Sequence record: OQ708376.1
Length of the DNA stretch: 64,000 nucleotides
Strand: one strand, 5' to 3'
The notes beneath the pieces were generated by a model. It had not been told where the DNA came from and made no database searches. It saw nothing but the letters and a program-made list of their open reading frames with translations. Every line of letters begins with the position of its first letter. Position 1 is the first letter of the stretch. Below, piece after piece: positions 1,075 to 18,750 of this stretch. A program made the position numbers and the translations under genes.

Positions 1075-1125
1075 TTTTGGGCGTAACTATGCACCCGGTG
1101 GGCTTGAGTCTTTCTCGACTTGATG
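1075..1125 (-). ncRNA. candidate small RNA S1 (CCCA-NN-GGGTG family)
   Basis: TTGCTT-16-TATAAT on - strand, then hairpin AGTC-GAGAAA-GACT and AGCCCACCGGGTGC; no ORF. Confidence 0.45.
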
Positions 1126-1224
1126 GAACTATTATACAGTACTGGAAAAATAAAGCAATACCCTGGAAGCAAAAAAGTTTTAATTAATTTGCTTGCTATC
1201 CTGGGCCGGACTATGGTACTATAT

Positions 1225-1280
1225 TTCAGTACTGAGAAAGTGCGTTTACCTGCTAGGGTGCGGGAGTGTATCCTTTTTTT
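1225..1280 (+). ncRNA. candidate small RNA S2 (degenerate)
   Basis: ACCTGCTAGGGTGCGGGAGTGTATCC followed by T7. Confidence 0.35.
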
Positions 1281-1294
1281 ATATCTTGAATTTT

Positions 1295-1341
1295 GGACGG
1301 ATCTTCCCACCCCCTGGGGTATCCGCTTTCTCGCGTCTATG
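1295..1341 (-). ncRNA. candidate small RNA S3
   Basis: TTGACT-16-TATAAT on - strand, then CCCAGGGGGTGGGAAGATCCGTC. Confidence 0.4.
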
Positions 1342-1536
1342 TAGTAATTATACGCTTTTTCAGGATCAAGTCAATACCTAAAAACAAAATAATTGAAAAT
1401 AATTTAACGCGTTTAAACGGCCTGTAAAGCCCTGGAATGATTGGAATGGTGCAAATGTATAGCTTATGTGTATTAATGCGTTAGAATGCGTCTGAGGACG
1501 TTTTACGGGGTATAGGGATGATTTAGTGGATTGATT

Positions 1537-1623
1537 CAGTACTGAATAATAGTACTCCTATATAGAAAGATAGTTCCCCTGGATGATTGCAGTACTGAAT
1601 AATAGTACTCCTATATAGAAAGA
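1537..1623 (+). repeat. 34-bp perfect direct repeat x2
   Basis: cagtactgaataatagtactcctatatagaaaga at 1537-1570 and 1590-1623. Confidence 0.9.
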
Positions 1624-1737
1624 AAACTATTTTAAAAGTATTTGTAGAAAGTACTTGCACCGTACTGATAAAAGCGTATAATGTTTTACATCGAGAGCGG
1701 GAACACTTCCCGCTACACATTAAGAGAGATTAAAACG

Positions 1738-2100
1738 ATGGCGACTCAAATCAATAAAATCATGCTTAACCTGGTAAACTTCCGCGATGAGATGAAAGGT
1801 CTTCCGGCTGAAACTGTAAAAATTCACATTGCAGCTTATCGGGAACTTATTGCAATGTTGCCGCTTAAGCGTGAACAATACGCCGCTACTTTGATGCTGG
1901 ATTCAATGATCCATATAATGATCTCAAATGATTTGACGATGGTTTATCAGTATATGGGCGAAAATTTCGCGGTGTGTAGTAAGCCAGTACCAGGGATGGC
2001 AACAACTGAGGAATTGCACGGCTTAAACTTAAAACAAGATGCATGGGATAATATGCCTCGTTTCCTGGTATGGGCTGACAGTGGCAAAATTTACAAATAA
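1738..2100 (+). CDS. hypothetical early protein
   Basis: ATG after promoter-hairpin-RBS cassette. Confidence 0.8.
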   Translation: MATQINKIMLNLVNFRDEMKGLPAETVKIHIAAYRELIAMLPLKREQYAATLMLDSMIHIMISNDLTMVYQYMGENFAVCSKPVPGMATTEELHGLNLKQDAWDNMPRFLVWADSGKIYK

Positions 2101-2193
2101 GTTTAATAAAGTACTTGCAAACTATGTTTAATGGCGTATAATGTTTTACATCAGGTGGGGAATAGTTCCCCACTATATAAGAGGATTAAAAAA

Positions 2194-2433
2194 ATGGCTA
2201 AATCAAAAATGTTCTTAGGTCACAAAAACAAAACTCATTGGAATGTAAGCCTTTGGATTAATAACGATGAGGGATTGTATCGGTTGGCCCAGGACTTTAT
2301 TAACGATAGCACTAATCGCAATGATGCGGCCCGTCATATGATGTTATTTTTAGAACAGACTGGACAAGATAAAACACCGGACGGATTCAAATATAGCACT
2401 ACTGCGATCCGTGCGGCGATGGTTGGAATGTAA
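2194..2433 (+). CDS. conserved phage hypothetical protein (WNVSLWINNDEGLY...TPDG)
   Basis: GAGGA RBS; motif recalled from a widespread phage family. Confidence 0.8.
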   Translation: MAKSKMFLGHKNKTHWNVSLWINNDEGLYRLAQDFINDSTNRNDAARHMMLFLEQTGQDKTPDGFKYSTTAIRAAMVGM

Positions 2434-2519
2434 TAGAATTTATTTAAAGTACTATCATTTTTTTGCGATAGTACTTTATAATAGTGTTTTATTCATACAC
2501 CAACGATAAGGGCAACAGC

Positions 2520-2786
2520 ATGAAAATTAAGTATTTTGCGACGCGTGAACAAGCTCGGATCGCCGCACGCCAGGACGGGGCAACGTTTAAAGATATGGGC
2601 GTACAATCGGAACGTGGTAAACGTTGGGCCATTGTAAAGCGTAGTACCGCCAGATCATTACAGTACTGGTTAGCGGCCTTAAAAAGTCCCGATAGTGTAT
2701 CGCGTCGAGTGGTAGAAATAAAGCTCGACCGAAAGGGCAACCGCGTGACCGTGTACCGTACTAAAAAGATTGCAGTACTTGAATAA
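2520..2786 (+). CDS. basic early protein, paralogue of 14497..14892
   Basis: shared ATREQARIAAR/FKDMG/RWA/DRKGNRVTVY motifs. Confidence 0.8.
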   Translation: MKIKYFATREQARIAARQDGATFKDMGVQSERGKRWAIVKRSTARSLQYWLAALKSPDSVSRRVVEIKLDRKGNRVTVYRTKKIAVLE

Positions 2787-2867
2787 AAAGTACTTGCAAA
2801 CTATGTTTAATGGCGTATAATGTTTTACATCGAGAGCGGGAACTCTTCCCGCCTATAACCTGGAGTA

Positions 2868-3104
2868 ATGAAAATGACTAATATGTATATGACTGAAGTT
2901 AAAACCGTAAAAGATACTACCACGAATAAAACTACTTACTTACAGCGGATCTGTGGTGTATGGCAACGTATCAGCAAATCAAAGTACTTTAAATTAACAT
3001 CATATGCAAACCGTTCGGATTCATTCAGTACTGAAATAAAAGGTAATAAAGTACACCAATACGGCACTTATTATTATTATAGCCTGGACGCGATTGCAGT
3101 ATAA
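2868..3104 (+). CDS. hypothetical early protein
   Basis: cassette with GGAG RBS. Confidence 0.75.
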   Translation: MKMTNMYMTEVKTVKDTTTNKTTYLQRICGVWQRISKSKYFKLTSYANRSDSFSTEIKGNKVHQYGTYYYYSLDAIAV

Positions 3105-3169
3105 GCAGTTTACAAATCTTTACAATTGCCGGTATTGACTTATTTTGTCAGTACTGGCATAATGTATTC

Positions 3170-3215
3170 ATTGGCAGATAAGCCGTAGCCCATAGGGTGC
3201 GGGAGTGTATCTATA
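3170..3215 (+). ncRNA. candidate small RNA S4
   Basis: TTGACT-17-CATAAT (3135-3163), then AGCCCATAGGGTGCGGGAGTGTATCTA. Confidence 0.45.
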
Positions 3216-3234
3216 GAAAAATTAGTTTAGTATA

Positions 3235-3273
3235 GTTACAATTGTGCACCCGGTGGGTTAGCTGTTGTCATGG
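3235..3273 (-). ncRNA. candidate small RNA S5 (convergent with S4)
   Basis: TTGACA-17-TATAAT on - strand, then AACCCACCGGGTGCACAATTGTA. Confidence 0.45.
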
Positions 3274-3389
3274 GGTATATTATACCAGTACTTGATAATG
3301 CTGTCAATACTTTTTTTTTACTATTCAGTACTGAAAACTATTTTTAAAAAGTACTTGCAAACTATGTTTAAAGGCGTATAATGTTTTAC

Positions 3390-3464
3390 ATCAGGACGGG
3401 GAACGAAATAAGTAACTTCCCGTTAAGTAGCCCAGGAGTAAGGCACACGAAAAACTCCCCTGAT
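3390..3464 (+). ncRNA. candidate multi-stem RNA J1
   Basis: promoter 3356; ATCAGG/CCTGAT closing stem with two internal hairpins; next promoter follows with no ORF. Confidence 0.45.
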
Positions 3465-3532
3465 AAAATAGTTTGACAAATGTTTTTAAAAGCGTATAAT
3501 ACTTACATCAACTACTGAATGAGGGTTACAAA

Positions 3533-4144
3533 ATGAAAACTATCACTACTACTACTTATGTTATGGCTTTTTCTGAATTGAACGCAGAACAACAAACGTC
3601 AGCTATCGAACTGGTTCGGGAACGTGAAAAAAACTCAAACGACAATTATTTTTCTGAAAGTGAAATTGAATACTATAAAGAAACAGTACTACCGGAATAT
3701 GGCATTAATGACGCTGAAATACAATTCAGTGGTTTTTGGTCCCAGGGTGACGGTGCATCAATCAGTACTGACCACGTTGACGCAGTGAAGTTTTTACGCA
3801 AGGTAAGAGCATTAACTAAGTATCGCTCAATCCGTCACTTGCTGAATGAAGATGATTTGGCGATGAGTGTAAAACGTTCGCACTCCCACTACTCGCATGA
3901 GAATACTGTAAGCGGGTACATTGAATCGGCTTACACTGATTTAACCGCAAAACAAGAAACGTTAGTTAATGAGCTTGAGGAACTACTCACTGAAACTATT
4001 CGTGAATTGTCCCGCAAGTTGTACCGTGATTTAGAGAATGCATATGAGGATCAATTCACTACTGAAAACATTACGGCACTGATTGAGGGTAACGAATATC
4101 AATTCAATGTTATTGATGGCGTAGTAGAATCAATCGAATATTAA
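3533..4144 (+). CDS. conserved phage protein (SGFWSQGDGAS family; often auto-annotated as antitoxin-like, unproven)
   Basis: FSEL...FSGFWSQGDGAS...HYSHE...LYRDLE..YE...NEYQF pattern; acidic. Confidence 0.8.
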   Translation: MKTITTTTYVMAFSELNAEQQTSAIELVREREKNSNDNYFSESEIEYYKETVLPEYGINDAEIQFSGFWSQGDGASISTDHVDAVKFLRKVRALTKYRSIRHLLNEDDLAMSVKRSHSHYSHENTVSGYIESAYTDLTAKQETLVNELEELLTETIRELSRKLYRDLENAYEDQFTTENITALIEGNEYQFNVIDGVVESIEY

Positions 4145-4236
4145 TTTAAAAAGTACTTGCAAACTAAGTTTAAAAGCGTATAATACTTTATATCGAGAGC
4201 GGGAATAGTTCCCGCTACTAATGAGGAATACTACAA

Positions 4237-4401
4237 ATGAATACTTTTACCTTCGCTCAATTGAACGCCCTGGATGTATTGTCTGATGCTTTGCGGGATG
4301 CAACTGAAAGCGGTTTATTTGACAATGTTGACATTCACCCTGATGTAATTAATAATTTTTGTGATGCTATCGCAGAAGTACTGGAAGATCTAAAAAAATA
4401 A
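4237..4401 (+). CDS. small acidic hypothetical protein (54 aa)
   Basis: below track cutoff; cassette and GAGGA RBS. Confidence 0.7.
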   Translation: MNTFTFAQLNALDVLSDALRDATESGLFDNVDIHPDVINNFCDAIAEVLEDLKK

Positions 4402-4489
4402 TAGAAAGTACTTGCAATTAGTTTTCAGTACTGTATAATGGTTTACATCAAAGGGAGAAATGGTTCTCCCTGGTAATGAGGAAAATACA

Positions 4490-4711
4490 ATGGCTAATAT
4501 CACTACTCTTTCCCAACTGGAAGCACTGGTTAAATCTATGCGGGAACATGCTGACAAAATCGGCGTACAAGATCCAGCCGTTTGCTTCTGCGACGAATTG
4601 AATGATGATACCCTGGTAATAGCAGAAGTCCAGGACGTTTCTAACTATTCCTCGCGTTACACTGGCGGCGTAGCAAATAAAGGTGACTTCTGTTTATACC
4701 TTACAAAATAA
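4490..4711 (+). CDS. hypothetical early protein
   Basis: GAGGA RBS after hairpin. Confidence 0.75.
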   Translation: MANITTLSQLEALVKSMREHADKIGVQDPAVCFCDELNDDTLVIAEVQDVSNYSSRYTGGVANKGDFCLYLTK

Positions 4712-4746
4712 CAACGCGGGGAGATAATAACTCCCCGTTACTTTTT
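4712..4746 (+). terminator. intrinsic terminator
   Basis: GGGGAG/CTCCCC stem and T tract. Confidence 0.6.
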
Positions 4747-4764
4747 CAGTACTGAATCATTTAA

Positions 4765-4812
4765 TAGACGGATCTCGGCACCCGGTGGGTTAGTGACTGT
4801 TTCGTCTTGATG
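4765..4812 (-). ncRNA. candidate small RNA S6
   Basis: TTGACA-17-CATAAT on - strand, then AACCCACCGGGTGCCGAGATCCGTC. Confidence 0.45.
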
Positions 4813-4954
4813 TAGTAATTATGCCAGTACTGGATGCACTTGTCAACAATTATTTTCCAAATACTTTTTATTAAAATACTTGCAATTAGTTTTTAAACGC
4901 GTATAATGTTTTGCATAGGGGGAGCGGTTCCCCTGGTAACTAAGGAATAATAAA

Positions 4955-5191
4955 ATGCTTGAACAAATCAAATCAACGTCTTCGAATGTAACGGGAACGG
5001 TAGCACACTTTACTAGTGATGAATCGCGGGGCGTTCCCTATTGTGCTGTACATGTAAACACTGAGGGTAACTACTGGTTTACGGTTTACGGATCATATTC
5101 ATTTGGACGGCCTGGACATCAAAAAATTCTGGATAAAGTACAACCAACGGGTAAAAATATCACTGCCGAAATGTTTTATAAAAAATCATAA
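4955..5191 (+). CDS. hypothetical early protein
   Basis: cassette and AAGGA RBS. Confidence 0.75.
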   Translation: MLEQIKSTSSNVTGTVAHFTSDESRGVPYCAVHVNTEGNYWFTVYGSYSFGRPGHQKILDKVQPTGKNITAEMFYKKS

Positions 5192-5275
5192 AGTACTTGC
5201 AATTAGTTTTTAGTACTGTATAATATTTTACATCGCAAGGGGAAACGGTTTCCCCTGGTAACTAAGGATAATCAA

Positions 5276-5575
5276 ATGAAAATTGCAATCATCGCCCTGG
5301 CTTTATCTGTTTCCTCTTTCGCTGTTAATGCGTCATTAGATGTAAGTAGTGAAAAATTCATTCAGTGCACTGTTGCAATGACCGATGAAAGAACTGGCGA
5401 GATTGTATTAAAGGATTTAGAGATCCAGCCGGAAGCATTTAAAAACGGCCCGTTCCATGAAGAAGACGAAAACGGTAGCACGACAATTTATTATGATGCC
5501 AGTACTAAACGCGGTTCGGTCACTGTAATGGATACCGAGAAAGTAACTCATACCGGCGTTATTAATTGCCGTTGA
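5276..5575 (+). CDS. exported/periplasmic protein
   Basis: signal peptide MKIAIIALALSVSSFAVNA; two Cys. Confidence 0.75.
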   Translation: MKIAIIALALSVSSFAVNASLDVSSEKFIQCTVAMTDERTGEIVLKDLEIQPEAFKNGPFHEEDENGSTTIYYDASTKRGSVTVMDTEKVTHTGVINCR

Positions 5576-5596
5576 TAGATACTACGGGGTAACATC

Positions 5597-5827
5597 ATGA
5601 CTAAGCGAATTGTTTTACTTAACGAAAGCAGTACTACACAACTACTTAACGCCGTGCATTATGATATTGAAACGAGCGTTAATCTTATCAGTACTGTAGT
5701 TCTGTTGGACACTGGAAAGGTAGCCAATGATAAAGCGATTGCAGGTATACTAACGGATCTTGTGCCTGGTAGCAGTGCACCAATAACGTTAAATGGTAAA
5801 GTGTTTAATATTTTACTCACTGATTAA
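5597..5827 (+). CDS. hypothetical protein
   Basis: ORF followed by terminator. Confidence 0.7.
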   Translation: MTKRIVLLNESSTTQLLNAVHYDIETSVNLISTVVLLDTGKVANDKAIAGILTDLVPGSSAPITLNGKVFNILLTD

Positions 5828-5833
5828 GTACAT

Positions 5834-5855
5834 AGCCCACCTGGTGGGCTTTTTT
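5834..5855 (+). terminator. intrinsic terminator
   Basis: AGCCCAC-CTG-GTGGGCT and T tract. Confidence 0.85.
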
Positions 5856-5944
5856 GTTTTTGTAGTATCGTAGTACTGAGATACTTTGAAAATAGTTTTA
5901 AAAAAGTAGTTGACATTACCACAGAAAAGCGTAGAATGTATTAC

Positions 5945-6017
5945 ATCAAGACGGGGAGCACTAAGTAGACCGCCAGTAAGTCGAACGAAAAACTGGACAC
6001 GTCGAGAAAACTTTGAT
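5945..6017 (+). ncRNA. structured leader/RNA J2
   Basis: shares ATCA.GACGGGGA, TAAGTAG and AGTAAG-N5-CGAAAAACT with J1/J3. Confidence 0.4.
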
Positions 6018-6060
6018 ACACTAATAAACGTAAACTAAACTTTAATTGAGGATTTATAAA

Positions 6061-6543
6061 ATGGCTAATGTAAAATCATTCATCAAAGCACTGGTAGCAA
6101 ATGAAACTAACGTCGCGGCTGAGATCCTGGCTGAACTGGATAACGATACCATGAAAGCGGTACGCAACAATTTTAACATTGCGTACAGTGAAGCTAAAGA
6201 ACTGCAAGCCAAAAAGGTAGCAGAACTGGAAGAACAGAAAAAAGCCCGTGAAGCAGAACTACAAGCAACAATTGAAAGTATTCAGGCGGCAGTGTCTGGA
6301 TTGGATCTGGAAGTGGTTGTAGAAATGGCACATAAAGCCCTGGCGGTTAAGTACGGTGAAGATAAGCCGGAATCTAAACCTAAAAAATGGATTCAAGAAC
6401 GTGTTACTGTAGTACTTGATAACGGTGAAGAACATTTGATTCCTGTACGCGGTAACTGCATTGCGGTAGTACTGGACGCTATCAAAGAAAGCGGTATGAC
6501 TCGCGAGGAATGGATCGAAGCTCATCGCAAAGTTGAAGCATAA
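6061..6543 (+). CDS. H-NS-like protein (putative)
   Basis: coiled-coil N-terminus; C-terminus VVLDNGEEHLIPVRGNCIAVVLDAIKESGMTREEW parallels H-NS [35 protein letters not shown]. Confidence 0.5.
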   Translation: MANVKSFIKALVANETNVAAEILAELDNDTMKAVRNNFNIAYSEAKELQAKKVAELEEQKKAREAELQATIESIQAAVSGLDLEVVVEMAHKALAVKYGEDKPESKPKKWIQERVTVVLDNGEEHLIPVRGNCIAVVLDAIKESGMTREEWIEAHRKVEA

Positions 6544-6564
6544 CAATTAAAGTACTGAATCACT

Positions 6565-6591
6565 AGCCCACCTTAAACAGTGGGCTTTTTT
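6565..6591 (+). terminator. intrinsic terminator
   Basis: AGCCCAC..GTGGGCT and T tract. Confidence 0.85.
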
Positions 6592-6828
6592 GTGTCTGTA
6601 GTATTCCAGTCCACCAGCACCGCCTAGAATCGATTCTAACGCATTAAACTGATTATCTGATACATCGCCCTAGCTGGTGGCGTTAAGGTCGTTAGAATGC
6701 GATTGAGAGCGTTTAAAGTATTTTGCAAAAAGTAATAAAAAGTACTTGCACGATTAAGAGATTAGCGTATAATGTTTTACATCGAGAGGGGGAAACGGTT
6801 CTCCTTCCAAATCAAAGGAATCAAAACA

Positions 6829-7056
6829 ATGGCTATTATCATTACTCGCGTATCTGGTACTACTGGCAACGAACAAGTAGTTGCAGTCATTACTAACAAG
6901 GCAGGTGCGGAATTGCAAAATGCAATGAATACCTGGGCCGTTAATGAGTTCGGTCAGTGGGCAAGTGTAGCATACATTGAAACCTATCAAGTGCCGTCGA
7001 TTAGTTTAACTGATTTGGGCGTTGAGCGTATCCTTTGCCTGGATGAATTAAATTAA
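6829..7056 (+). CDS. hypothetical early protein
   Basis: cassette and RBS. Confidence 0.75.
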   Translation: MAIIITRVSGTTGNEQVVAVITNKAGAELQNAMNTWAVNEFGQWASVAYIETYQVPSISLTDLGVERILCLDELN

Positions 7057-7142
7057 AAAAAGTACTTGCAAAGTAAATCGAATAAAGTATAATACATTAC
7101 ATCAAGGGGAGAAATGATTCTCCCCACTACAAGGAAACTAAA

Positions 7143-7355
7143 ATGGCTATCATTACTAAAATCAAAGTTAACAAGACTATCGTTAAACTGGCAGAAGTGA
7201 AAGAAGGTTATAAAGTATCTTGGTGCGGTATGTATCGGACGTTCGCAGATATAGATGATGCGATCAATTATTACAGTGACACGGTTAAAAACTTTGTTCG
7301 TGCTGATGTGGTTATGGCAGTGGCAACATATAAAGCAGCGAAAGAAAGTAAGTAA
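7143..7355 (+). CDS. hypothetical early protein, similar to 10054..10233
   Basis: cassette; MAII..K...G.Y.VS.....R...D/E.A pattern. Confidence 0.75.
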   Translation: MAIITKIKVNKTIVKLAEVKEGYKVSWCGMYRTFADIDDAINYYSDTVKNFVRADVVMAVATYKAAKESK

Positions 7356-7446
7356 AAATATTATCACAGTACTATTGACATAGTTTGATAGTACTGGCAT
7401 AATAGATTTTATCAAGACGACACATATTAATTTAAGGAATACTAAA

Positions 7447-7770
7447 ATGGCTAAAACTATCATCAACACCGTTTCCCTGGCTGCAATCCATGCAATCAAT
7501 GTTGACGGTAAACGTTGGACTGATTCATATGGCAATACTTATCATTCTTGTCATGTAAGCGTTGAACTGGATAACGGCTTGAATGATCTGGCGGTTGAAT
7601 CATTTACTTATGGCTATGAGGATGCATATCAACAAACGGCGGTATCACTCTTAAAGGAATCAGTAGACGGGCTTGATACTGTTGAAACCTCCCTCTATCG
7701 TTTGTGCAATGATCTTAATATCCCGTTGCATTGTACTGTACAGGATGTAAAACGTAAAAAAGATCTTTAA
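7447..7770 (+). CDS. early protein, paralogue of 14078..14401
   Basis: RWTD..GNTYHSC, FTYGY, DVKRKKD motifs. Confidence 0.8.
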   Translation: MAKTIINTVSLAAIHAINVDGKRWTDSYGNTYHSCHVSVELDNGLNDLAVESFTYGYEDAYQQTAVSLLKESVDGLDTVETSLYRLCNDLNIPLHCTVQDVKRKKDL

Positions 7771-7850
7771 TTAGCTTTACTTTATGCAGATACTTTGATA
7801 TAGTGTCTGCATAGGGGAAAGAAATTAAATCAACTTAAGAGGAAAGTAAA

Positions 7851-8120
7851 ATGAAAAATATCAGTACTTTAATCGATGCAGGTACACATGTTCGTCGGTC
7901 TATGGTTGCAACCAGTTCTACAAAACAAGTAGCGAGCGGTTATCTTGTATTTGTGCACGATGGAAAACTCCTGGAACGTTCAATCAATTTTGATGTTAAA
8001 AACAATTGCCGTTTTATTATCTTTCGCCGTGAACAATATAAAATTGATTTGCCAGCGAAGCCCATTAGCGGGGCGTACAACGTGCAATCATTGTTTGAGC
8101 GTCAACCTTACACCTATTAA
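7851..8120 (+). CDS. hypothetical protein
   Basis: GAGGA RBS. Confidence 0.7.
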   Translation: MKNISTLIDAGTHVRRSMVATSSTKQVASGYLVFVHDGKLLERSINFDVKNNCRFIIFRREQYKIDLPAKPISGAYNVQSLFERQPYTY

Positions 8121-8171
8121 TCAAAACATCGTTAGCGGTCGATTTAGGCCGCTTATATTGGGGATTATACC

Positions 8172-8444: not shown

Positions 8445-8449
8445 TTAAT

Positions 8450-8659: not shown

Positions 8660-8727
8660 TTTTTAAACGCGTATAATGTTTTACATGAAGGGGAGAAATG
8701 ATTCTCCCCAATAACAGGAGAAACAAA

Positions 8728-10779: not shown

Positions 10780-10818
10780 ACTATTGACAATATCATCAAG
10801 TACTGGCATAATACTTAC

Positions 10819-11368: not shown

Positions 11369-11431
11369 AAAGTATTGACAGTACTGAAAGATAGTGTATA
11401 ATGTTTTATATCTTAACTGAGGATAGAAATC

Positions 11432-11788: not shown

Positions 11789-11860
11789 TACTTGCATTTA
11801 GTTTTCAGTAGTGTTATAGTACTTACATCAAGGGGAAACATCTTCCCCTACTAAGAGGAA

Positions 11861-12055
11861 ATGAAAATGGAAAACTTATCAAGTATTTTAGTACAAGATG
11901 ATTTCGGTAATCCTGGAAGTGCTATCATTGTTCGGGGTAATAAAGCAACATTTGTTATTGCTGGTGGACCTGTACAGCGTAGCATTAAAAACAATGCCGT
12001 TACTATTAATAATGTACGCTATCGCTTAGATAAAGAATTGATTCATAAACTGTAA
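11861..12055 (+). CDS. hypothetical early protein
   Basis: cassette. Confidence 0.7.
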   Translation: MKMENLSSILVQDDFGNPGSAIIVRGNKATFVIAGGPVQRSIKNNAVTINNVRYRLDKELIHKL

Positions 12056-12082
12056 TATTAATTTAATAGAGGATAACAATAA

Positions 12083-12406
12083 ATGTACATTCATACTACT
12101 ATCACAAAGGAAGTCCGTTGCCAGTTCGAAAGTATTCCGGGCGTATGTTTCATCACTGGTACGTTTTCCCCTGGTGATCGTGATAATCCAGTACTGTTAC
12201 AATTACGCCATCCATCATGGGATAAAGCATTTGATCTACCGTTGAATGAATTCGCAACTACTGCTGAAAAGTACATTAAAAATATTCGCGAGAATGATCG
12301 ACTATTCATTAATGCTTTTAGTGATTCCGCGTTAAGCGAGATCCACGGTGTATTGGTTGCAATCATGGAATCAATGGAGAAAACTAAATTCAAACAAGGT
12401 GAATAA
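12083..12406 (+). CDS. hypothetical protein
   Basis: GAGGA RBS. Confidence 0.75.
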   Translation: MYIHTTITKEVRCQFESIPGVCFITGTFSPGDRDNPVLLQLRHPSWDKAFDLPLNEFATTAEKYIKNIRENDRLFINAFSDSALSEIHGVLVAIMESMEKTKFKQGE

Positions 12407-12489
12407 AAACTATTGACAAGATAATCTAGTACTGTATAATAAGTTACATGAAGGGGAGAAATGATTCTCCCCACTGAGAGGAAAGAAAA

Positions 12490-12702
12490 ATGCAAGGTCA
12501 ACTAATCGTTCGTAAATGGTCTGATACTAACGCTAAACCGTGGGATGTACAATACATCGGACCGGATGGGGTATCACGTTATCAGCCTGGCGTAACGCAT
12601 AGTACTGAGCAATATGCCGCCGCTCACCGCGAACGCCTGTTAGAATCCATGAAACAGGGATACGGTGAAAAATTCATTCAAGATCATTGGCTGAAAGATT
12701 AA
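12490..12702 (+). CDS. hypothetical early protein
   Basis: cassette. Confidence 0.75.
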   Translation: MQGQLIVRKWSDTNAKPWDVQYIGPDGVSRYQPGVTHSTEQYAAAHRERLLESMKQGYGEKFIQDHWLKD

Positions 12703-12719
12703 TATAAGGAGTACAGCTT

Positions 12720-13127
12720 ATGCAAATGAATCCGATGATTATTGTTTTAGCTGTACTTATGATCATTCATGCAATAGTAGAAGTATTAACGCAATCAGGA
12801 GTAATAAAATGATTCAAGTAGAATTATCAGTACTGAAAGATCTGTTTTATCGGTTAGGTACTACTGGCGAGTATCCTAAAAGTGATACCGCAAAACTTTT
12901 TGTATCACTCGACTTATGGCAACGCGAACAATTAGTAATGTCCTGGCGTAAAGGTAAAGCAGATAGCGAGGTGAAAGCATGAAAGAATTCTTATTCGAAG
13001 TAGTGTTTCAAGGTGTCGGTAGTAACCAACTGATTCGCTCAAGTGGTTACAATGTTAACCAGGCATGGAATAACATTAAACAAATGTACCCGAACGCTAT
13101 CACCTATCGCAACCCGAAACAAGTTTA
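12720..13127 (+). CDS. three tiny coupled ORFs (~30, ~57, ~49 aa; first hydrophobic)
   Basis: AAGGAG/AGGAG/GAGG RBSs with ATGA overlaps; below track cutoff. Confidence 0.5.
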
Positions 13128-13181
13128 AAAATAATTGAAAAAGGGATTGACTCCGGTCAGTCCCTTTGCTATTATATACGC

Positions 13182-13223
13182 ATAGAAACAAATCAGCCCA
13201 CAGGGTGCATAAATGTATCTATT
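13182..13223 (+). ncRNA. candidate small RNA S9
   Basis: TTGACT-17-TATTAT, then AGCCCACAGGGTGCATAAATGTATCTA. Confidence 0.45.
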
Positions 13224-13301
13224 GTTTGCTGGTGGCTAGTACTGAAAACTATTTTTAAAAAAGTACTTGCATTGTACTTAGAATCAAGTATAATGTTTTA
13301 C

Positions 13302-13374
13302 ATCAGGACGGGGAACGAAACAAGTAACCCCGTTAAGTAGTCCAGGAGTAAGACATAAGAAAACCTCCCCTGAT
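13302..13374 (+). ncRNA. candidate multi-stem RNA J3
   Basis: near copy of J1 with stems preserved. Confidence 0.45.
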
Positions 13375-13443
13375 AAAATAGTTTGACAATAGAAAGTAAA
13401 CGAGTATAATACTTACATCAACCACTGATAAGGAAACATTAAA

Positions 13444-13719
13444 ATGCGGATTCTACTGACAGCTAACGAAATCGAACAAGTACTGACTACTAACCTGGAA
13501 GACTGGAAACGTGAAGCAGATATCCAGGCGGTTCAACGGCTTAACGATGAGTTAACGCCGGATGACTTAAGCAAGATTGTAGATCCTCAATTCTACGAAG
13601 ATATCCACGACACCGCGTTAAGCGTCGAGGATGTACTAGATAAGCACTACATTGATATTGATTTGCAGGTTTACGGTCGTAAAAACTTTATCACTATTCA
13701 CGACATTTACAATAATTAA
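13444..13719 (+). CDS. acidic hypothetical protein
   Basis: promoter and AAGGA RBS; D/E-rich. Confidence 0.75.
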   Translation: MRILLTANEIEQVLTTNLEDWKREADIQAVQRLNDELTPDDLSKIVDPQFYEDIHDTALSVEDVLDKHYIDIDLQVYGRKNFITIHDIYNN

Positions 13720-13805
13720 GTATTGACAAAGTATCTTAGTACTGTATAATAGTTTACATCGAGAGGGGGAATGGTTCCCCTCCTAACAAAGAGAGAGAAA
13801 TAAAA

Positions 13806-13988
13806 ATGGCTAAATGCACTATCTGTAAGAAAGAAATCGTATTAGTTCCAAGTGCCCGTGAACGTGCCGCTCGGTTCGGTGGCAAAGCGTCAGACTATAC
13901 AAAAATGTTTACTACCCATGCAGCTTGCCAGGTAGCAAAACGTTCACAAGAAAGCGTAGAATTAATGCGTAAACTTTCCAAAAAATAA
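13806..13988 (+). CDS. small putative Zn-binding protein
   Basis: CxxC ... HxxC. Confidence 0.75.
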   Translation: MAKCTICKKEIVLVPSARERAARFGGKASDYTKMFTTHAACQVAKRSQESVELMRKLSKK

Positions 13989-14077
13989 GTATTGACAAAG
14001 TATCTTAGTACTGTATAATAGTTTACATCAAGCGAGGGGAATGGTTCCCCTCCTAACTAAAAGAGAGAGAAATAAAA

Positions 14078-14401
14078 ATGGCTATGATCCTTACCCAGAA
14101 AGTAGAACTGAAAATTGTAACCTCCTTTGACATTAAAGTTAATCGCTGGACTGATCGGAACGGTAACACTTACCACTCTTGCTACGTGTCCGCGTTAATT
14201 GGCGACCGCTGGGAAGACTTGGGACATGAAACCTTTACTTACGGTTACGGTACACAAGGAGAATACACGGGCTTGGAGATCATTAAAGAAACCGTTATAG
14301 GTTTCAACCCGAAAGAAAAAGTTATTCACCGCATCGAAAAAGAGATTAACAAAGAAATAACAGTTCGCTACTACGATGTAAAACGTAAGAAAGACATGTA
14401 A
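14078..14401 (+). CDS. early protein, paralogue of 7447..7770
   Basis: RWTDRNGNTYHSC, FTYGY, DVKRKKD. Confidence 0.8.
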   Translation: MAMILTQKVELKIVTSFDIKVNRWTDRNGNTYHSCYVSALIGDRWEDLGHETFTYGYGTQGEYTGLEIIKETVIGFNPKEKVIHRIEKEINKEITVRYYDVKRKKDM

Positions 14402-14496
14402 TAGAATCCATTTAAAGTACTATTTGACATTGCCCAGATAGTACTTTATAATAGACTCTAACTTGTAGTACTAACTCAACTAATAGGATGTATACC

Positions 14497-14892
14497 ATGA
14501 TTACTAAATTCTACGCTACCCGTGAAGCTGCCCGTATTGTTGCACGCGAGGAAGGAGCAGCATTTAAAGACATGGGCAAAGATGCACCGAAAGGTCAACG
14601 CTGGGCCGTACAGTTCAAAGAAATCTCTGATATCGTGAATTCACCGGAGCCAGTACTAACAGCAGCAGAACTAAAACGAGCGGATTTACTGGCGGCAGTA
14701 CTTAACGCACAAGATGAATTTATCGCTGATTCTGATATCAAAGTACAGACAAACCATACCGCTTGGACTCACGCGGATCACCTGGCAAACCTTAAGCGTC
14801 CAAGTGAACTGGTTCGCAACCAGAAAGAGATCCGACACGACCGTAAGGGTAATCGTGTAACAGTATACAGTAAACGCCGCCAGGTTATCTAA
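14497..14892 (+). CDS. early protein, paralogue of 2520..2786
   Basis: ATREAARIVAR, FKDMG, DRKGNRVTVY. Confidence 0.8.
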   Translation: MITKFYATREAARIVAREEGAAFKDMGKDAPKGQRWAVQFKEISDIVNSPEPVLTAAELKRADLLAAVLNAQDEFIADSDIKVQTNHTAWTHADHLANLKRPSELVRNQKEIRHDRKGNRVTVYSKRRQVI

Positions 14893-14914
14893 TAACTTGC
14901 AGTACTAACAACAC

Positions 14915-14939
14915 GGCGGGATCAGTTCCCGCCTTTTTT
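14915..14939 (+). terminator. intrinsic terminator
   Basis: GGCGGGA/TCCCGCC and T tract. Confidence 0.85.
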
Positions 14940-14954
14940 ATAGGATAAACTAAA

Positions 14955-15209
14955 ATGATTAAGGTACAACTATCTAAAGATAATATCTTGCGGGTACACT
15001 ATAAAGCACCACAGAGAATCATCACAAAGGCCGTACAGCTTGCTAATGAGTTTATTAATGGTAACCTATTACCAAGGAAGTTAAGCAACGGAAAACTGCG
15101 TGTAATCGATGTAGACACTAACAACAGAATAGTAATTGAGAACACAGGAAAGATAAACCTATATGAACACCAACAATATAATAAGAAAATAAAACTAATA
15201 TCACGTTGA
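14955..15209 (+). CDS. basic hypothetical protein
   Basis: AGGA RBS. Confidence 0.7.
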   Translation: MIKVQLSKDNILRVHYKAPQRIITKAVQLANEFINGNLLPRKLSNGKLRVIDVDTNNRIVIENTGKINLYEHQQYNKKIKLISR

Positions 15210-15262
15210 CAGTACTCAATTGTTTTAGTACTATGTACATATACCAACACGGGAGAAACAAA

Positions 15263-15481
15263 ATGAAATTATCTAAAATCGAAAAGAAAACTATTGATGA
15301 AGCAGTTAAGCACGGTTATACCTTTCGTAATGATTCACATTTTACCAATTTTCAACAAGGGTATCGTACTATTAAAAAACTCATTGACAAAGGTTTATTA
15401 GTTGAAGTCAATAACGGCAATGGTATTGAGTATCAACCAACACAAGACGCATTTTATTTTAAGAAATATAATATTATCTAA
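15263..15481 (+). CDS. possible winged-helix protein
   Basis: TIKKLIDKGLLVEV...YQPT pattern. Confidence 0.55.
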   Translation: MKLSKIEKKTIDEAVKHGYTFRNDSHFTNFQQGYRTIKKLIDKGLLVEVNNGNGIEYQPTQDAFYFKKYNII

Positions 15482-15539
15482 TTGACAGTACTCAAATGTT
15501 TTAGTACTATATGTACATACCAACACGGGGAAAAACAAA

Positions 15540-15782
15540 ATGATTACTTTAGAAAAACGTATCAAAGAAACTACATCGCTGGTGGAACTGTTAACAGTAC
15601 TGAAATGCCGTACTACTCGGTTTAGTACACCGGACTTTATTAATATGGTTGATGTTAATGGTCGCTATCGTATCACGGTCGAACAAGGAGCGGCGAAAGT
15701 ATTCAGTACTAAAAACACTAAGGAAGTGATTCACGCTGTAAGTGTTAAAAAAGTAGTTGCCATTGATAGTAAAGTACTGTAA
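15540..15782 (+). CDS. hypothetical protein
   Basis: promoter nearly identical to that of 15263. Confidence 0.7.
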   Translation: MITLEKRIKETTSLVELLTVLKCRTTRFSTPDFINMVDVNGRYRITVEQGAAKVFSTKNTKEVIHAVSVKKVVAIDSKVL

Positions 15783-15813
15783 GATAGTTTCATTAACTCA
15801 AGGAGAACATGCA

Positions 15814-16398
15814 ATGCGTAATTATACTAAATTCATCCGTACCCTGTCAGAAATGGAAACCAACAAAGAGATCCTTTCAGCTTGTCGGTTAGCTGGTCTG
15901 GAGATCATCGGTGCGGGTTCTTCCCGTATTGTATTCGCTTTAAATGATCGGTTAGTGATTAAGGTCGCGAATTGTGATGCGGGTGTAGAACAAAATGAAA
16001 CTGAATGTAAGGTATGGAATTTTTTAGATTATGACCGCCCTCAATTGAAACAGTACTTTGCAAAGGTGCATATGCATTTATGCGATCCTGATAATATGTT
16101 TATCGTTATGGATCGGTTGAGTACTGCAAGTAAAGGCAGTGTAAAGCACGTAAACGCGTGCAATGAATTAAAGTACAATATTAAACGTAATGCCATTGAA
16201 CGCCAGCACCGCTTTGCTGATGCACTACAACACGTTGATGATACATTATCAACACTAACGATAAGAGATATCAGAAAACAGAATATCGGCCAGGATCGTA
16301 ATGGCCTTATTAAAGTACTTGATTACGGTTTAACCCGCAATATCTGGAATCAGTACTATAAAAAGCGTGATGTAGAAGCAAGTAAGGTAACACGATAA
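15814..16398 (+). CDS. minimal Ser/Thr protein kinase-fold protein
   Basis: GAGSSRIVF, VIK, helix-C Glu (NETE), RDIRKQN, LDYG. Confidence 0.85.
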   Translation: MRNYTKFIRTLSEMETNKEILSACRLAGLEIIGAGSSRIVFALNDRLVIKVANCDAGVEQNETECKVWNFLDYDRPQLKQYFAKVHMHLCDPDNMFIVMDRLSTASKGSVKHVNACNELKYNIKRNAIERQHRFADALQHVDDTLSTLTIRDIRKQNIGQDRNGLIKVLDYGLTRNIWNQYYKKRDVEASKVTR

Positions 16399-16451
16399 AA
16401 AAGATTAAAAAAGGGATTGACTCCGGTCAGTCCCTTTGCTATTATATATTC

Positions 16452-16498
16452 ATTGAGAGATAACTCACTGACCCATAGGGTGCGGAAGTGTATCTATT
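16452..16498 (+). ncRNA. candidate small RNA S10
   Basis: TTGACT-17-TATTAT, then ACCCATAGGGTGCGGAAGTGTATCTA. Confidence 0.45.
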
Positions 16499-16619
16499 AT
16501 ATAAGTATTCAGTACTGAAAACTATTTTTAAAAAAGTACTTGCATTGTACTTAGAATCAAGTATAATGTTTTACATAGAGAGGGGGAAATGGTTCTCCCT
16601 GGTAATAAGGAATAAAATC

Positions 16620-16841
16620 ATGACTACAATGACTTGCATTTACGCTTCCAATCTTCTGAATGATGCGGCCTTTAATGTTGATTCAGAATATCAATGTTAT
16701 CGGGATGAAAATAAAAAAGTTTTTGTAGTTGATAATAATGGTTTCCATATTGAATTACAATCCGGTTTCACTGGTGTTGATGGTAAATCAGTGTGGGGCG
16801 TACAGGATGATAAAGGCACATATCATTTTAAACGTAATTAA
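16620..16841 (+). CDS. hypothetical early protein
   Basis: cassette. Confidence 0.75.
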   Translation: MTTMTCIYASNLLNDAAFNVDSEYQCYRDENKKVFVVDNNGFHIELQSGFTGVDGKSVWGVQDDKGTYHFKRN

Positions 16842-16925
16842 GTATTGACAAAGTATATCAGTACTGTATAATAGTTTACATCAAGGGGAGAATAGTTCTC
16901 CCCGATACTAAAAGGAAACAAAATT

Positions 16926-17198
16926 ATGTCCAGCTACTCCGCTACTATGATCATTAAAGATATGAACGGTAATCCTACTTCTGCTGGTGGATCATTTGGA
17001 AACATTAATTTAGATGGTCGGTTATCCATGCAATCAGCCATCGATGCAGCGAAAGAAGTTTTTAAGAATGAATGTACTGTTAGTAAGATGGATTATATGG
17101 GATTCGCTATCGAGAAAACTAATCGTTTTGTGAACTACAAAAATCCACTGATGATTGATACTAACCTGAAAGCTAACGAAGTGGGGTACTTATTATGA
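16926..17198 (+). CDS. hypothetical early protein
   Basis: cassette. Confidence 0.75.
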   Translation: MSSYSATMIIKDMNGNPTSAGGSFGNINLDGRLSMQSAIDAAKEVFKNECTVSKMDYMGFAIEKTNRFVNYKNPLMIDTNLKANEVGYLL

Positions 17199-17386
17199 CA
17201 GTAGAAGAAGTTAAAAAAGTACTGGCAGTACTACGCTATCATAATCATTGCAAGGTGAAGAATGATCCTGATTATGTTGATTCATCCCTGGAGGAAGACA
17301 CATTAAACGCAATAAGCCATATGCAAACATTAGCAAAGCGTATGACCGAAAAGAATAGACCGGACTATATCGGAAATAAAATTTAA
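17195..17386 (+). CDS. hypothetical protein
   Basis: ATGA overlap. Confidence 0.7.
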   Translation: MTVEEVKKVLAVLRYHNHCKVKNDPDYVDSSLEEDTLNAISHMQTLAKRMTEKNRPDYIGNKI

Positions 17387-17472
17387 AAAGTACTTGCATT
17401 GTAGTTAGATTAACGTATAATGTTTTACATAGAGCGGGGGAATAGTTCTCCCGCCAGTCCAGGAGATACACC

Positions 17473-17736
17473 ATGAACACTATCGAAATCACTATCAATG
17501 CACACGTATACGACAACGTAGTACTGCAAACTACTATGACCGCTAATGATACCAGTACTTTGCGGAATACCGTTGTAAGTGCTGTATGTGCTGCAATCGG
17601 TGATGTAGCCCTGGAAAATGCAGAACACATCAACAACGGTTTCACTATGTGCAAACGTGATAACGCAAAACATATCATCTTAGAAGGTTACGGCGGTGTA
17701 GAATATAATCTTTATATGAAAAAAGTACTTGCATAA
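17473..17736 (+). CDS. hypothetical early protein
   Basis: cassette. Confidence 0.75.
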   Translation: MNTIEITINAHVYDNVVLQTTMTANDTSTLRNTVVSAVCAAIGDVALENAEHINNGFTMCKRDNAKHIILEGYGGVEYNLYMKKVLA

Positions 17737-17803
17737 TAACTAAAACAAAGTATAATGTTTTGCATAGGGGGAGATATCCTCCCCCACTAAAAGGAGTAAT
17801 AAA

Positions 17804-18028
17804 ATGGCTAACTTTGATGAACTGATGCGGGAAGTAGCTAACCTGGCAGAAGAGAAGAAATCATTCGATTCTATCTATAACACCGCTCACCGTGATTCAG
17901 TACTGGCATGTACTCAGGATCAAAAAGATGAACTAATCGCCACCTATCATGAAGCATGGAAGTACTACCGACAATGGGAGAAAGAAGAAAGTGAGTCTAC
18001 CATTGACGGCCTCAATAATCTAATCTAA
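17804..18028 (+). CDS. acidic helical early protein
   Basis: cassette. Confidence 0.75.
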   Translation: MANFDELMREVANLAEEKKSFDSIYNTAHRDSVLACTQDQKDELIATYHEAWKYYRQWEKEESESTIDGLNNLI

Positions 18029-18104
18029 AAGTTTTATTTCAGTACTATTGACATAGCTTGATAGTACTGATGTAATAACTTTACTAACTACAAGGGGAAA
18101 CATA

Positions 18105-18362
18105 ATGGAACAGTTCACACAATATCGGGTAAATCCTCAAGCTATGGCCTACGTAGAAGACCATAAAACATTACCAGTACTGCAACCAGTTAAAGGCCAT
18201 ATCTATCGTGCTATGTCGTGGAGTACTGCACAGGATGGATATAAAACCGTTGCCGTGGGTATGTATTGCGGGAATGGTGAATGGTTTGATCCAAATAATC
18301 CGGTAGCCATTGACAGTACTGAAAAAATGAAATGGGCCGACTACATCGAAGATATTTCATAA
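18105..18362 (+). CDS. hypothetical protein
   Basis: promoter and RBS. Confidence 0.75.
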   Translation: MEQFTQYRVNPQAMAYVEDHKTLPVLQPVKGHIYRAMSWSTAQDGYKTVAVGMYCGNGEWFDPNNPVAIDSTEKMKWADYIEDIS

Positions 18363-18451
18363 AACTATTTGACAGTACTAACCAGTAATGTATAATGTTT
18401 TACATAGAGCGGGGGAATAGTTCTCCCGTCAATAGTTTGGAGTAAAACATT

Positions 18452-18652
18452 ATGTCTATCGCTATCGCCCTGGTTGAAGTACTGAAAGAAGCTAAAGCCA
18501 ACCTTATCGATGTACAGATTAAGGAATTACAAAATGGTTTAATCGGCTGTACTTGTACCGCTGGTGGAGCGGCAGACTATCGGGAATTCGAATCACTTGA
18601 ATCGATGGTCCGTTATCTTACCATGATCGTAGAAGATTGGAGAATCATCTAA
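18452..18652 (+). CDS. hypothetical early protein
   Basis: cassette. Confidence 0.75.
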   Translation: MSIAIALVEVLKEAKANLIDVQIKELQNGLIGCTCTAGGAADYREFESLESMVRYLTMIVEDWRII

Positions 18653-18709
18653 CAAAAAAGAATAAAAAAAGGGATTGACTCCGGTCAGTCCCTTTGCTAT
18701 TATATACTC

Positions 18710-18750
18710 ATAGACAAAAACTAGCCCACTGGGTGCAGGAGTGTATCTAA
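18710..18750 (+). ncRNA. candidate small RNA S11
   Basis: TTGACT-17-TATTAT, then AGCCCACTGGGTGCAGGAGTGTATCTA. Confidence 0.45.

Follow-up and report, generated by a model that had tools for sequence, protein, structure and literature searches.

A promoter-coupled RNA element repeated in the terminal repeat of 121Q/RaK2-like jumbo phages, a candidate family of early decoy RNAs

The window analyzed here, a 64,000-nucleotide (64 kb) stretch of sequence record OQ708376.1, carries ten full copies and one degenerate copy of a short non-coding element built around a near-invariant 12-nt core, CCC-AYN-GGGUGC. The copies lie on both strands, each a fixed short distance downstream of a sigma70-type promoter, and all fall within the terminal repeat of the phage genome. 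The same element recurs in relatives infecting six genera of enterobacteria, and we rate it, from sequence, as a new RNA family among phage early non-coding RNAs and leader elements. The reading that we favor, tentatively and with something short of even confidence, is that the family is an RNA module, abundant early in infection, that binds a protein and works as a decoy or sponge.

Bases 1000–5000 of the window are 100% identical to OQ708376.1, the 366,301 bp genome of Escherichia phage vB_EcoM_CRJP21 (genus Asteriusvirus), a 121Q/RaK2-like jumbo phage, and the window represents the left end of that genome. Since record position 346150 repeats window base 1, with complete identity across the 4351 bases compared, we place a direct terminal repeat (DTR) of 20,152 bp (window positions 1–20152) at both genome ends. 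This promoter-dense early region holds all 11 element copies, from which it follows that each virion genome carries 22. The homologous region is annotated as a terminal repeat in the relatives fENko-Kae01 (1–19736), CBB (1–22456), Muenster and vB_Ec-M-J. The annotated genes of the DTR are all small, all on the plus strand and mostly of no known function, and ARAGORN found no tRNA or tmRNA genes in the window.

The pattern CCCANNGGGTG has 10 exact matches in the 64 kb, at 1092(-), 1308(-), 3189(+), 3247(-), 4779(-), 9175(+), 10841(+), 13197(+), 16472(+) and 18725(+), all within 1092–18735, against 0.10 expected from shuffled sequence; CCCNNNGGGTGC has 9 matches against 0.02 expected. A covariance model (R1), built from 59 distinct homologous copies from seven loci and run unfiltered on the full 64 kb, recovered exactly these ten copies (44–66 bits) together with the degenerate copy at 1254–1294(+), which scores 22.5 bits and matches model positions 33–73 only, i.e. 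the 3′ half. Nothing credible was found by this search past 18769. An earlier reading of the same letters (hereafter the original prediction) had listed eleven copies; its positions were right to within 1–3 nt and its list proved complete. It had also described the copies as non-coding, and no open reading frame (ORF) common to them was found. A small protein-coding gene was rejected on this ground and because stop codons lie right before the core: UAA, UAG or UGA stands immediately 5′ of CCC in 71 of 111 distinct copies of the family.

Searches of other genomes found the element in RaK2-like phages. BLAST with one copy returned 60 phage records, 56 of them with full or long matches and all of these RaK2-like phages of Escherichia, Klebsiella, Salmonella, Cronobacter, Pectobacterium and Erwinia; the remaining four records were Brochothrix phages in which only 30 nt matched. 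Across the relatives R1 identified 118 copies (111 distinct) at 21 loci from six enterobacterial phage lineages and IMG/VR contigs, with 8–12 copies per fetched terminal-repeat region, on both strands and always in the DTR or early region. Outside the DTR no copy turned up, whether in the window from 20 to 64 kb, in the 8 kb leading up to the right DTR or in flanking non-repeat sequence of CBB, RaK2 and GAP32, and in whole-genome contigs of 121Q, CBB, GAP32 and RaK2 every exact-pattern match lies within the DTR-equivalent locus. Two exact-pattern scans of IMG/VR gave RaK2-like contigs only, among the matches listed (20 stretches each). The rV5-like phages share the gp_5 gene only, and one Phapecoctavirus shares an mRNA-type early promoter only; neither has the element. 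When 185,579 bacterial species genomes were scanned for convergent pairs of the kind described below, 44 stretches came up, none of them in Enterobacterales. None was accepted as a family member: they are long palindromic repeats from Ruminococcus and palindromes arising by chance in GC-rich genomes, and the 13 loci read lack a promoter context. Several Ruminococcus genomes hold many copies of such a repeat (...atttcagcCCCATAGGGTGCAT...ATGCACCCTATGGGgctgaaat...), which contains the 12-mer of the element and is linked to it by that 12-mer alone; a promoter context was absent from the copies read.

The gene content of the DTR is very different between genera, while the element cassette persists; it is the most conserved sequence feature of the DTR, outlasting the surrounding genes across six host genera. 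Convergent pairs with cores 68–79 nt apart recur in every genus; in the window, the degenerate copy at 1251(+) faces copy 3 and copy 4 faces copy 5, as had been noticed. In fENko-Kae01, RaK2 and Hallingskeid one minus-strand copy is flanked by the same pair of gene families, with position and orientation kept across three genera. Its 5′ region varies (no stem, AGC/GCU or GCC/GGC), and a bidirectional terminator follows it in at least two of the genera. Within one genome, the copies have little sequence in common beyond ~20 nt.

The counts that follow come from the model-fitted alignment (A2) of the 111 distinct copies. The three C positions of the core are conserved in 111, 111 and 109 copies, the A in 107 and the Y in 106, followed by any nucleotide; then come GGG (109, 111 and 110), U (111), G (110) and C (105). 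Immediately upstream stands U-A-R or a close variant (UAG in 31 copies, UAA in 29, UGA in 11 and AAG in 13). Downstream, a variable 6-nt loop leads to a 3′ arm of the form N-Y-R-Y-Y-Y, whose last five positions are Y, R, Y, Y and Y in 100, 100, 90, 95 and 93% of copies, and the tail beyond the element is ~85% A/T (consensus AUWRNWU). The ~20 nt after the predicted start form a stem-loop in 47 of 62 copies (~75%), with a 3–5 bp stem and an A-rich loop of 4–9 nt, mostly 6–7, that ends in AA. These 5′ stems have ~20 different sequences and a mean energy of -3.0 kcal/mol, compared with -0.8 for shuffled sequence; copies that have none show an unpaired GAAAACAA-like stretch instead. Some 5′ hairpin classes, e.g. 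AGCAAGAACAAUGCU and GGCAGAUAAGCC, are ancient and identical across genera.

Two hairpins can form around the core, and they are mutually exclusive because both use GGGU; the alternative is present in all copies. Hairpin alpha pairs the upstream (R)CCC with GGGU around an AYN triloop and was selected unaided by RNAalifold. Hairpin beta pairs GGGUG with the 3′ arm, whose Y-R-Y-Y-Y exactly complements G-U-G-G-G read backwards once wobble pairs are allowed; 90% of cells are paired in this helix, against 34–64% for registers slid by 1–3 columns (MAFFT alignment A1, which is not structure-fitted). Some variants keep beta (GGGUAC with AUACCC; GGAUGC with CUAUCU), and several copies have fully Watson–Crick 3′ arms (AUACCC, ACACCC, ACGCCC). 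Others keep alpha: one copy carries a CCU...AGG double change, and five have a 4-nt loop with CCC and GGG retained. The two are of similar computed stability, with mean energies of -3.6 kcal/mol for alpha and -2.2 for beta and with beta the stronger in 47 of the 111 copies. Transitions that keep G-U, G-C, U-A or U-G pairs make sense only in RNA of the transcribed strand, and the RNA-level structure of the original prediction is supported by the covarying 5′ stems and the pairing-preserving 3′ arm. Of its motifs, RCCC-AYN-GGGT corresponds to alpha and TGCR-NNNN-TGTA to the inner half of beta, the longer helix being GGGUG(C)/(G)YRYYY. Long-range pairing, or a pseudoknot, linking the 5′ region to the 3′ arm or loop was rejected, as cognate partners paired no better than non-cognate ones (permutation p = 0.19 and 0.06).

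The element is closely coupled to its promoter. A promoter scoring at least 10/12, with the -10 end 20–30 nt before CCC, precedes 89% of 121 copies compared with 3% of random DTR positions, and overall 89–98% of copies have a promoter of their own. The typical one is of sigma70 type with 17-bp spacing and a TG extended -10; the orientation of the element relative to it is identical in all family copies, the core always sits at +14 to +33, and the predicted RNA start is the A of 'CAT', for example 4811(-) and 9155(+) in the window. In the window the score is 12/12 for the copy at 3257(-), 11/12 for 1318(-), 4789(-) and 10841(+), and 10/12 with a TG extended -10 for 3189(+), 9175(+), 13197(+), 16472(+) and 18725(+). 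The promoter of the copy at 1102(-) was read by eye (TTGCTT-16-TATAAT, 1158–1131), and that at 1251(+) has only TTGCTA-18-TACTAT. A sigma70-like promoter before each copy, weak at 1251(+), had been proposed and is seen; the minus-strand element promoters are not, as was also proposed, the sole strong ones on that strand, since other promoter-like sites score 11/12 at 1033–1005 and 15850–15821. They are the best minus-strand promoters in the window.

In four plus-strand copies (9113, 13140, 16410 and 18668) the gene before ends in a terminator hairpin that encloses the -35 box TTGACT. These fused terminator-promoters (9113–9148, 13140–13175, 16410–16445 and 18668–18703) place TTGACT within the 5′ arm and loop of a strong hairpin with a UUCG or UCCG loop, and the terminator T-tract runs into the TG-extended -10, a layout kept in all genera examined.

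The individual copies vary around this plan. Copy 1 (1079–1158, minus strand; 44.1 bits) has the 5′ hairpin AGUC-GAGAAA-GACU, core CCCACCGGGUGC (1102–1091) and 3′ arm ACGCCC, and folds into the 5′ hairpin plus a GGGUG/CGCCC helix with z = -2.4. The degenerate copy (1193–1281, plus strand) is missing CCC (UGCUAGGGUGC) and has the helix GGGUGCGG-GAGU-GUAUCC and a U7 run; positions 1255–1274 plus TTTTTTT scored as terminator-like, beta and U7 together forming a clean intrinsic terminator. Convergent with it is copy 3 (1295–1374, minus strand; 51.4 bits), with promoter TTGACT-16-TATAAT (1374–1347), 5′ hairpin CGC-GAGAAA-GCG, core CCCAGGGGGUGG and 3′ arm CCGUCC. The second convergent pair consists of copy 4 (3135–3212, plus strand; 57.5 bits), with promoter TTGACT-17-CATAAT with TG, 5′ hairpin GGC-AGAUAA-GCC, core CCCAUAGGGUGC, loop GGGAGU and 3′ arm GUAUCU, and copy 5 (3234–3307, minus strand; 48.9 bits), which has the consensus promoter TTGACA-17-TATAAT with TG, no 5′ stem (AUGACAACAGCUAA), core CCCACCGGGUGC and 3′ arm GUAACU. 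Copy 6 (4705–4846, minus strand; 50.8 bits) carries promoter TTGACA-17-CATAAT with TG (4846–4818), back to back with the promoter of gp_8, followed by a 5′ hairpin, core CCCACCGGGUGC (4789–4778), 3′ arm CCGUCU and a bidirectional terminator at 4737–4717.

The other five copies are all on the plus strand. Copy 7 (9113–9198; 63 bits) begins in the gp_19 terminator hairpin (9113–9140), which encloses -35 TTGACT, and continues with -10 TATTAT with TG, a 5′ hairpin, core CCCACAGGGUGC, loop AGGAGU and 3′ arm GUAUCU. Copy 8 (10784–10864; 52.2 bits) has promoter TTGACA-17-CATAAT with TG, 5′ hairpin GACG-AGAA-CGUC, core CCCAUAGGGUGC, loop ACAAAU and 3′ arm GUAACU. The last three likewise start in a terminator hairpin with an embedded -35 and share -10 TATTAT and 3′ arm GUAUCU: copy 9 (13140–13220, hairpin 13140–13167; 54.9 bits) has no 5′ stem (AUAGAAACAAAUCAG), core CCCACAGGGUGC and loop AUAAAU; copy 10 (16410–16495, hairpin 16410–16437; 66 bits) has a 5′ hairpin, core CCCAUAGGGUGC and loop GGAAGU; and copy 11 (18668–18748, hairpin 18668–18695; 57.2 bits) has no 5′ stem, core CCCACUGGGUGC and loop AGGAGU. 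Copy 11 is the last, 1.4 kb short of the DTR boundary.

With respect to transcripts, six plus-strand copies stand exactly at operon heads, four directly after a terminator, and the next gene has its own promoter 70–100 nt downstream of the plus copies. No general terminator of the element was found in the window or the relatives: a Rho-independent, terminator-like site lies within 260 nt of 19 of 122 copies, mostly minus ones (7/69 plus, 12/53 minus). Of the two marks of an Hfq-type trans-acting sRNA gene, its own promoter and a Rho-independent terminator with a U-tail, the family regularly shows the first and seldom the second. Minus copies with a terminator use the bidirectional terminator of the neighboring plus-strand gene, ~25 nt past the element. 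Among the window copies only 1251(+), with its U7, and 4789(-), with the bidirectional terminator, have a terminator next, and a U-tract after beta occurs only in 1251(+) and a few relatives (beta plus U5 in GAP32 17348 and CBB 15231). The discrete 40–70 nt RNAs that had been expected are not predicted because there is no general terminator. The product of 4789(-) is predicted to be a discrete RNA of ~107 nt, and some minus copies should give small RNAs (sRNAs) of ~100 nt. That the minus copies are not mRNA leaders, as the original prediction had it, agrees with the conservation between genera: they are gene-less units and cannot be such leaders, because the same slot is kept in fENko-Kae01, RaK2 and Hallingskeid. 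The early mRNAs of the first 5.4 kb (1690–1725, 2150–2180, 2830–2860, 4195–4220 and others) begin ~7 nt past the -10 with AUC and carry a GC-rich 5′ hairpin (GCGGGAA-NN-UUCCCGC type) before the Shine-Dalgarno sequence, which probably protects the 5′ end.

What has to be explained, then, is the near-invariance of 12 nt amid gene turnover, 11 copies per repeat, the strongest promoter type, both orientations, restriction to the early DNA that enters first and the selection of small hairpins. We infer that a decoy or sponge, a role put forward in the original prediction, is the most economical reading of these features. Host RNA polymerase would make element RNAs in bulk in the first minutes of infection from the 22 gene copies per genome, and the invariant hairpin with its flanks would serve as a binding site for a host RNA-binding or defense factor, or for an early phage protein, which the RNAs would titrate or sequester in trans. 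The 5′ stem-loop would shield the 5′ end, as on the early mRNAs of the phage, and the alpha/beta alternative would tune exposure of the site. Minus copies would act as stand-alone sRNA genes, and plus copies would put the same module at the head of operon transcripts. In PA5oct, a related jumbo phage, RNA-seq showed the DTR to be highly transcribed early, with abundant non-coding RNAs (ncRNAs) (PMC7318152). These data support the setting only, because R1 found no element match in the PA5oct DTR stretch (record positions 7000–24000) that holds both ncRNAs.

Several observations weigh against a decoy. Most copies have no intrinsic terminator, and the plus copies, at operon heads, may be leaders of the next gene. 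Single-sequence folds are weakly better than shuffles (z -0.1 to -2.4). Covariation in homologues, on which the original prediction had staked its structure, is present in the 5′ stems; beta, by comparison, rests on one-sided changes, for which column shuffling gives no separation from chance. Because the CCC and GGGUG arms are invariant, support for alpha consists of the one double compensatory change and the loop-size variants. The analysis points to no specific protein partner, and full-text literature searches for transcriptomics of this phage group found none. Lastly, a decoy has no obvious need for two alternative hairpins or for a fixed distance from the start site.

A bolder version of the decoy, which we regard as rather doubtful, is an RNA-based device for host takeover or counter-defense, in which ~22 promoter-driven copies would, in a matter of minutes, flood the cell with a small bistable hairpin RNA that captures a protein conserved in Enterobacterales (an RNA-binding regulator, a ribonuclease or a defense sensor). 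The 5′ hairpin classes AGCAAGAACAAUGCU and GGCAGAUAAGCC may then add distinct specificities. An equally new alternative would be a factor-independent RNA that reprograms host RNA polymerase in a lytic jumbo phage.

The main rival to the decoy is a cis-acting 5′ leader, in which the nascent element acts on its own polymerase or transcript, either by put- or nut-like antitermination (with an N-like protein in the latter case) or as an alpha/beta attenuator in which alpha blocks beta and beta stops or destabilizes the transcript. We consider such a leader fairly unlikely overall, though it accounts well for the fixed distance of the element from the start site, for the three-segment alternative pairing (CCC / GGG / YYY) typical of attenuators and for the six plus copies at operon heads. 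At 1251(+), which has no CCC and carries a U-run after the hairpin, beta makes a clean terminator, and the same hairpin with U5 in GAP32 and CBB points in that direction; furthermore, leftward copies at the edge of the DTR would need to traverse kilobases that are not translated. Yet the tail after beta is A/U-mixed in most copies and not a U-tract, every downstream gene has a strong promoter of its own, and the conserved minus copies run into a bidirectional terminator with no gene to serve. The antitermination signals boxA and ops are both absent from the DTR.

Three further explanations seem much less probable. Transcription-primed origins or R-loop sites, the latter also raised in the original prediction, where, as at T4 oriF/oriG or the primary origin of T7, a G-cluster RNA (GGGUGCGGAGG) would remain hybridized next to AT-rich DNA that unwinds, would fit the strong promoter, the G-rich initial transcript, the ~85% A/T tail and the presence of copies in the terminal repeat on both strands. 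We nevertheless hold this very unlikely: eleven origins per repeat are hard to explain, an R-loop has no need of the feature under selection, a wobble-paired RNA hairpin accompanied by a covarying 5′ stem, the pairs are convergent rather than divergent, and cumulative GC skew has no turning point in the window. Little probability likewise attaches to a DNA-level operator, i.e. a 12-bp motif downstream of one class of early promoters and bound by a phage or host regulator for shut-off or as a roadblock. The sequence is invariant, CCCnnnGGG is palindromic in DNA and the site is always at +14 to +33, all in favor of an operator; but C/T and A/G changes in the 3′ arm that preserve pairing with GGGUG are meaningless for duplex DNA, the 5′ stems covary, and promoters lacking a gene are left unexplained. 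It is about as improbable that the copies are mobile promoter cassettes of the PeSL kind, recombination points for shuffling early genes whose RNA has no function. Terminator-plus-promoter composites do flank small accessory genes in a plastic region, and the cassette persists where DTR gene content differs greatly between genera. On the other hand, the ~20 nt shared within a genome are not long enough for homologous exchange to be efficient, orthologous copies hold syntenic positions in different genera, and an invariant 12 nt beside freely varying loops indicates selection on the motif itself.

With regard to known systems, Rfam 15 gave no match at the gathering score in the 64 kb, and at E ≤ 5 over positions 1–20200 gave four weak matches, none on the core motif; one of them, to PhrS (8971–9144), overlaps only the promoter/terminator hairpin of copy 7. 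Any resemblance to the tmRNA 5′ region, 16S h44 and the RyhB terminator is weak. The SPO1 and T5 terminal-repeat modules for host takeover are comparable as long, first-entering repeats crowded with terminators, strong early promoters of the host type and numerous tiny genes; they are not known to contain a repeated promoter-proximal RNA motif. Full-text searches for the motif found no description of the element in the literature, and the CBB genome paper lists promoters and terminators and not the element (PMC5259590).

Among RNA decoys, CsrB/CsrC/RsmZ (for CsrA), CrcZ (Hfq/Crc) and 6S RNA (sigma70 holoenzyme) resemble the element as abundant ncRNAs with a short conserved motif in a small hairpin and multiple sites, and like CsrA decoys the element often has GGA or GGAG in its loop. 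Unlike CsrB-type decoys, with many sites per RNA, it is multiplied by gene (~11 promoters per repeat) with one site per RNA. CsrA titration through GGA loops, suggested in the original prediction, did not hold up: GGA is in or near the loop of 61 of 111 copies (55%) and GGAG in 41 of 111, while CCC..GGGUGC is invariant. With one site per unit, a CsrA sponge of the CsrB/RsmZ type was rejected as the conserved function.

HK022 put and lambda nut sites resemble the element as promoter-proximal pairs of small stem-loops at the head of phage early units, and the 5′ hairpin loop of the element is purine-rich. It differs in having no boxA, in loops of 6–8 nt that are not GNRA-like pentaloops, in orphan minus copies that end at terminators and in downstream genes with promoters of their own. 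A two-hairpin layout is present, such as that of put, whose stem-loops render the transcribing polymerase terminator-resistant in cis with no protein factor. A lambda-type nut site was rejected, the boxA consensus (YGCTCTTWA) occurring 0 times in the DTR and 3 times elsewhere in the window against 1.9 expected, with 5′ loops of 4–9 nt, and the RfaH ops element GGCGGTAGNNTG was rejected with 0 matches at ≤1 mismatch. PeSL cassettes of T4-type phages, of which RaK2-like phages are distant relatives (PMC5259590), share the repeated early sigma70 promoters and stem-loop between small accessory genes in a hyperplastic early region. The element adds to this an invariant transcribed motif with RNA-level constraints, and its copies stand on both strands without a gene and are syntenic across genera, which argues against recent mobility. 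PA5oct ncRNA001 and ncRNA002 are also DTR-encoded non-coding transcripts, abundant from early infection (PMC7318152); being single-copy, 236 and 451 nt long and without an R1 match, they are analogous in place only.

Other features of the repeat were observed near or between the copies. In the gene-free left 1.7 kb (720–910 and 1075–1087) there are tandem and dispersed GGCTAGACGG/CTAAACGGCTAGAT units and three copies of GATTTTGGGCGTAG; because the third of these coincides with the 3′ arm plus tail of element copy 1, the other two may be element remnants. Four TGATCA/GATC sites (ATTGATCAAAAAATGATCTGATCAATACTTGATCAA) follow copy 8 directly at ~10870–10910, and Erwinia phage Hallingskeid has a similar cluster after its orthologous copy. 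Near-consensus Fur boxes (GAGAATGATAATCATTTAC) lie between or beside convergent element pairs in Klebsiella, Salmonella and Erwinia relatives (locus L002, 7323–7345 and 1047–1075; L004, 6690–6720 and 7520–7545; L007, 1120–1150 and 1662–1690), and none was found in the window within 3 mismatches. Chi sites (GCTGGTGG) occur on the plus strand at 590, 6673, 10498, 11960, 13228, 15578, 16983, 18560 and 18783, i.e. 9 in the DTR and 0 in the next 44 kb, with those at 13228 and 18783 just past element copies; minus-strand sites are at 578 and 6611, near the left end. The plus-strand orientation would attenuate RecBCD entering from the right genome end.

The gp_5 gene (3533–4144) has 65–71% DNA identity with rV5-like phages (rV5 gp180 family), and the annotation of its homologue in Klebsiella phage Muenster reads YeeU-like antitoxin. 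Ahead of it stands an element copy of the GGCAGAUAAGCC type, copy 4, and the same hairpin type precedes the gene in GAP32 and CBB. The mRNA-type early promoter region at 3370–3518 (AAAAGTACTTGCAAACTATGTTTAAAGGCGTATAATG...) is 86–96% identical to intergenic DNA of unrelated myoviruses (Phapecoctavirus muut, A7_1 and JLBYU50), which suggests that promoter modules are exchanged between phage groups. With 129 sites in the DTR, where base composition predicts 6.5, and another 125 in the remaining 44 kb, the palindrome AGTACT is spread over the whole window (e.g. 99, 195, 341, 381, 524 and 550); it is found in promoter spacers (CAGTACTGGCATAAT), over -35 boxes (AAAGTACTTGCAA), after transcription units (TTCAGTACTGAA) and inside genes (54/127 sites), and may serve as an operator, as a target of modification or as a signal for processing. 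At 935–975(+), AGTTCCCCTACCGCGTGGGGATAGTTTCC resembles the E. coli type I-E CRISPR repeat, with flanks AGTTCCCC and GGGGATA around a hairpin; present in vB_EcoM_CRJP21 and 121Q and not in the Klebsiella, Cronobacter, Pectobacterium and Erwinia relatives, it could be a solitary repeat acting as an RNA anti-CRISPR.

RaK2/121Q-like jumbo phages are studied and used as therapeutic phages against E. coli, Klebsiella and Salmonella, and next to nothing is known of how their 20-kb terminal repeat takes over the host. The covariance model is ready for annotating RaK2-like genomes, in which several copies of the element are mis-annotated as hypothetical proteins. The element would count as a new phage RNA decoy should it prove to bind a host factor, and as a new transcription-control RNA should it work in cis.

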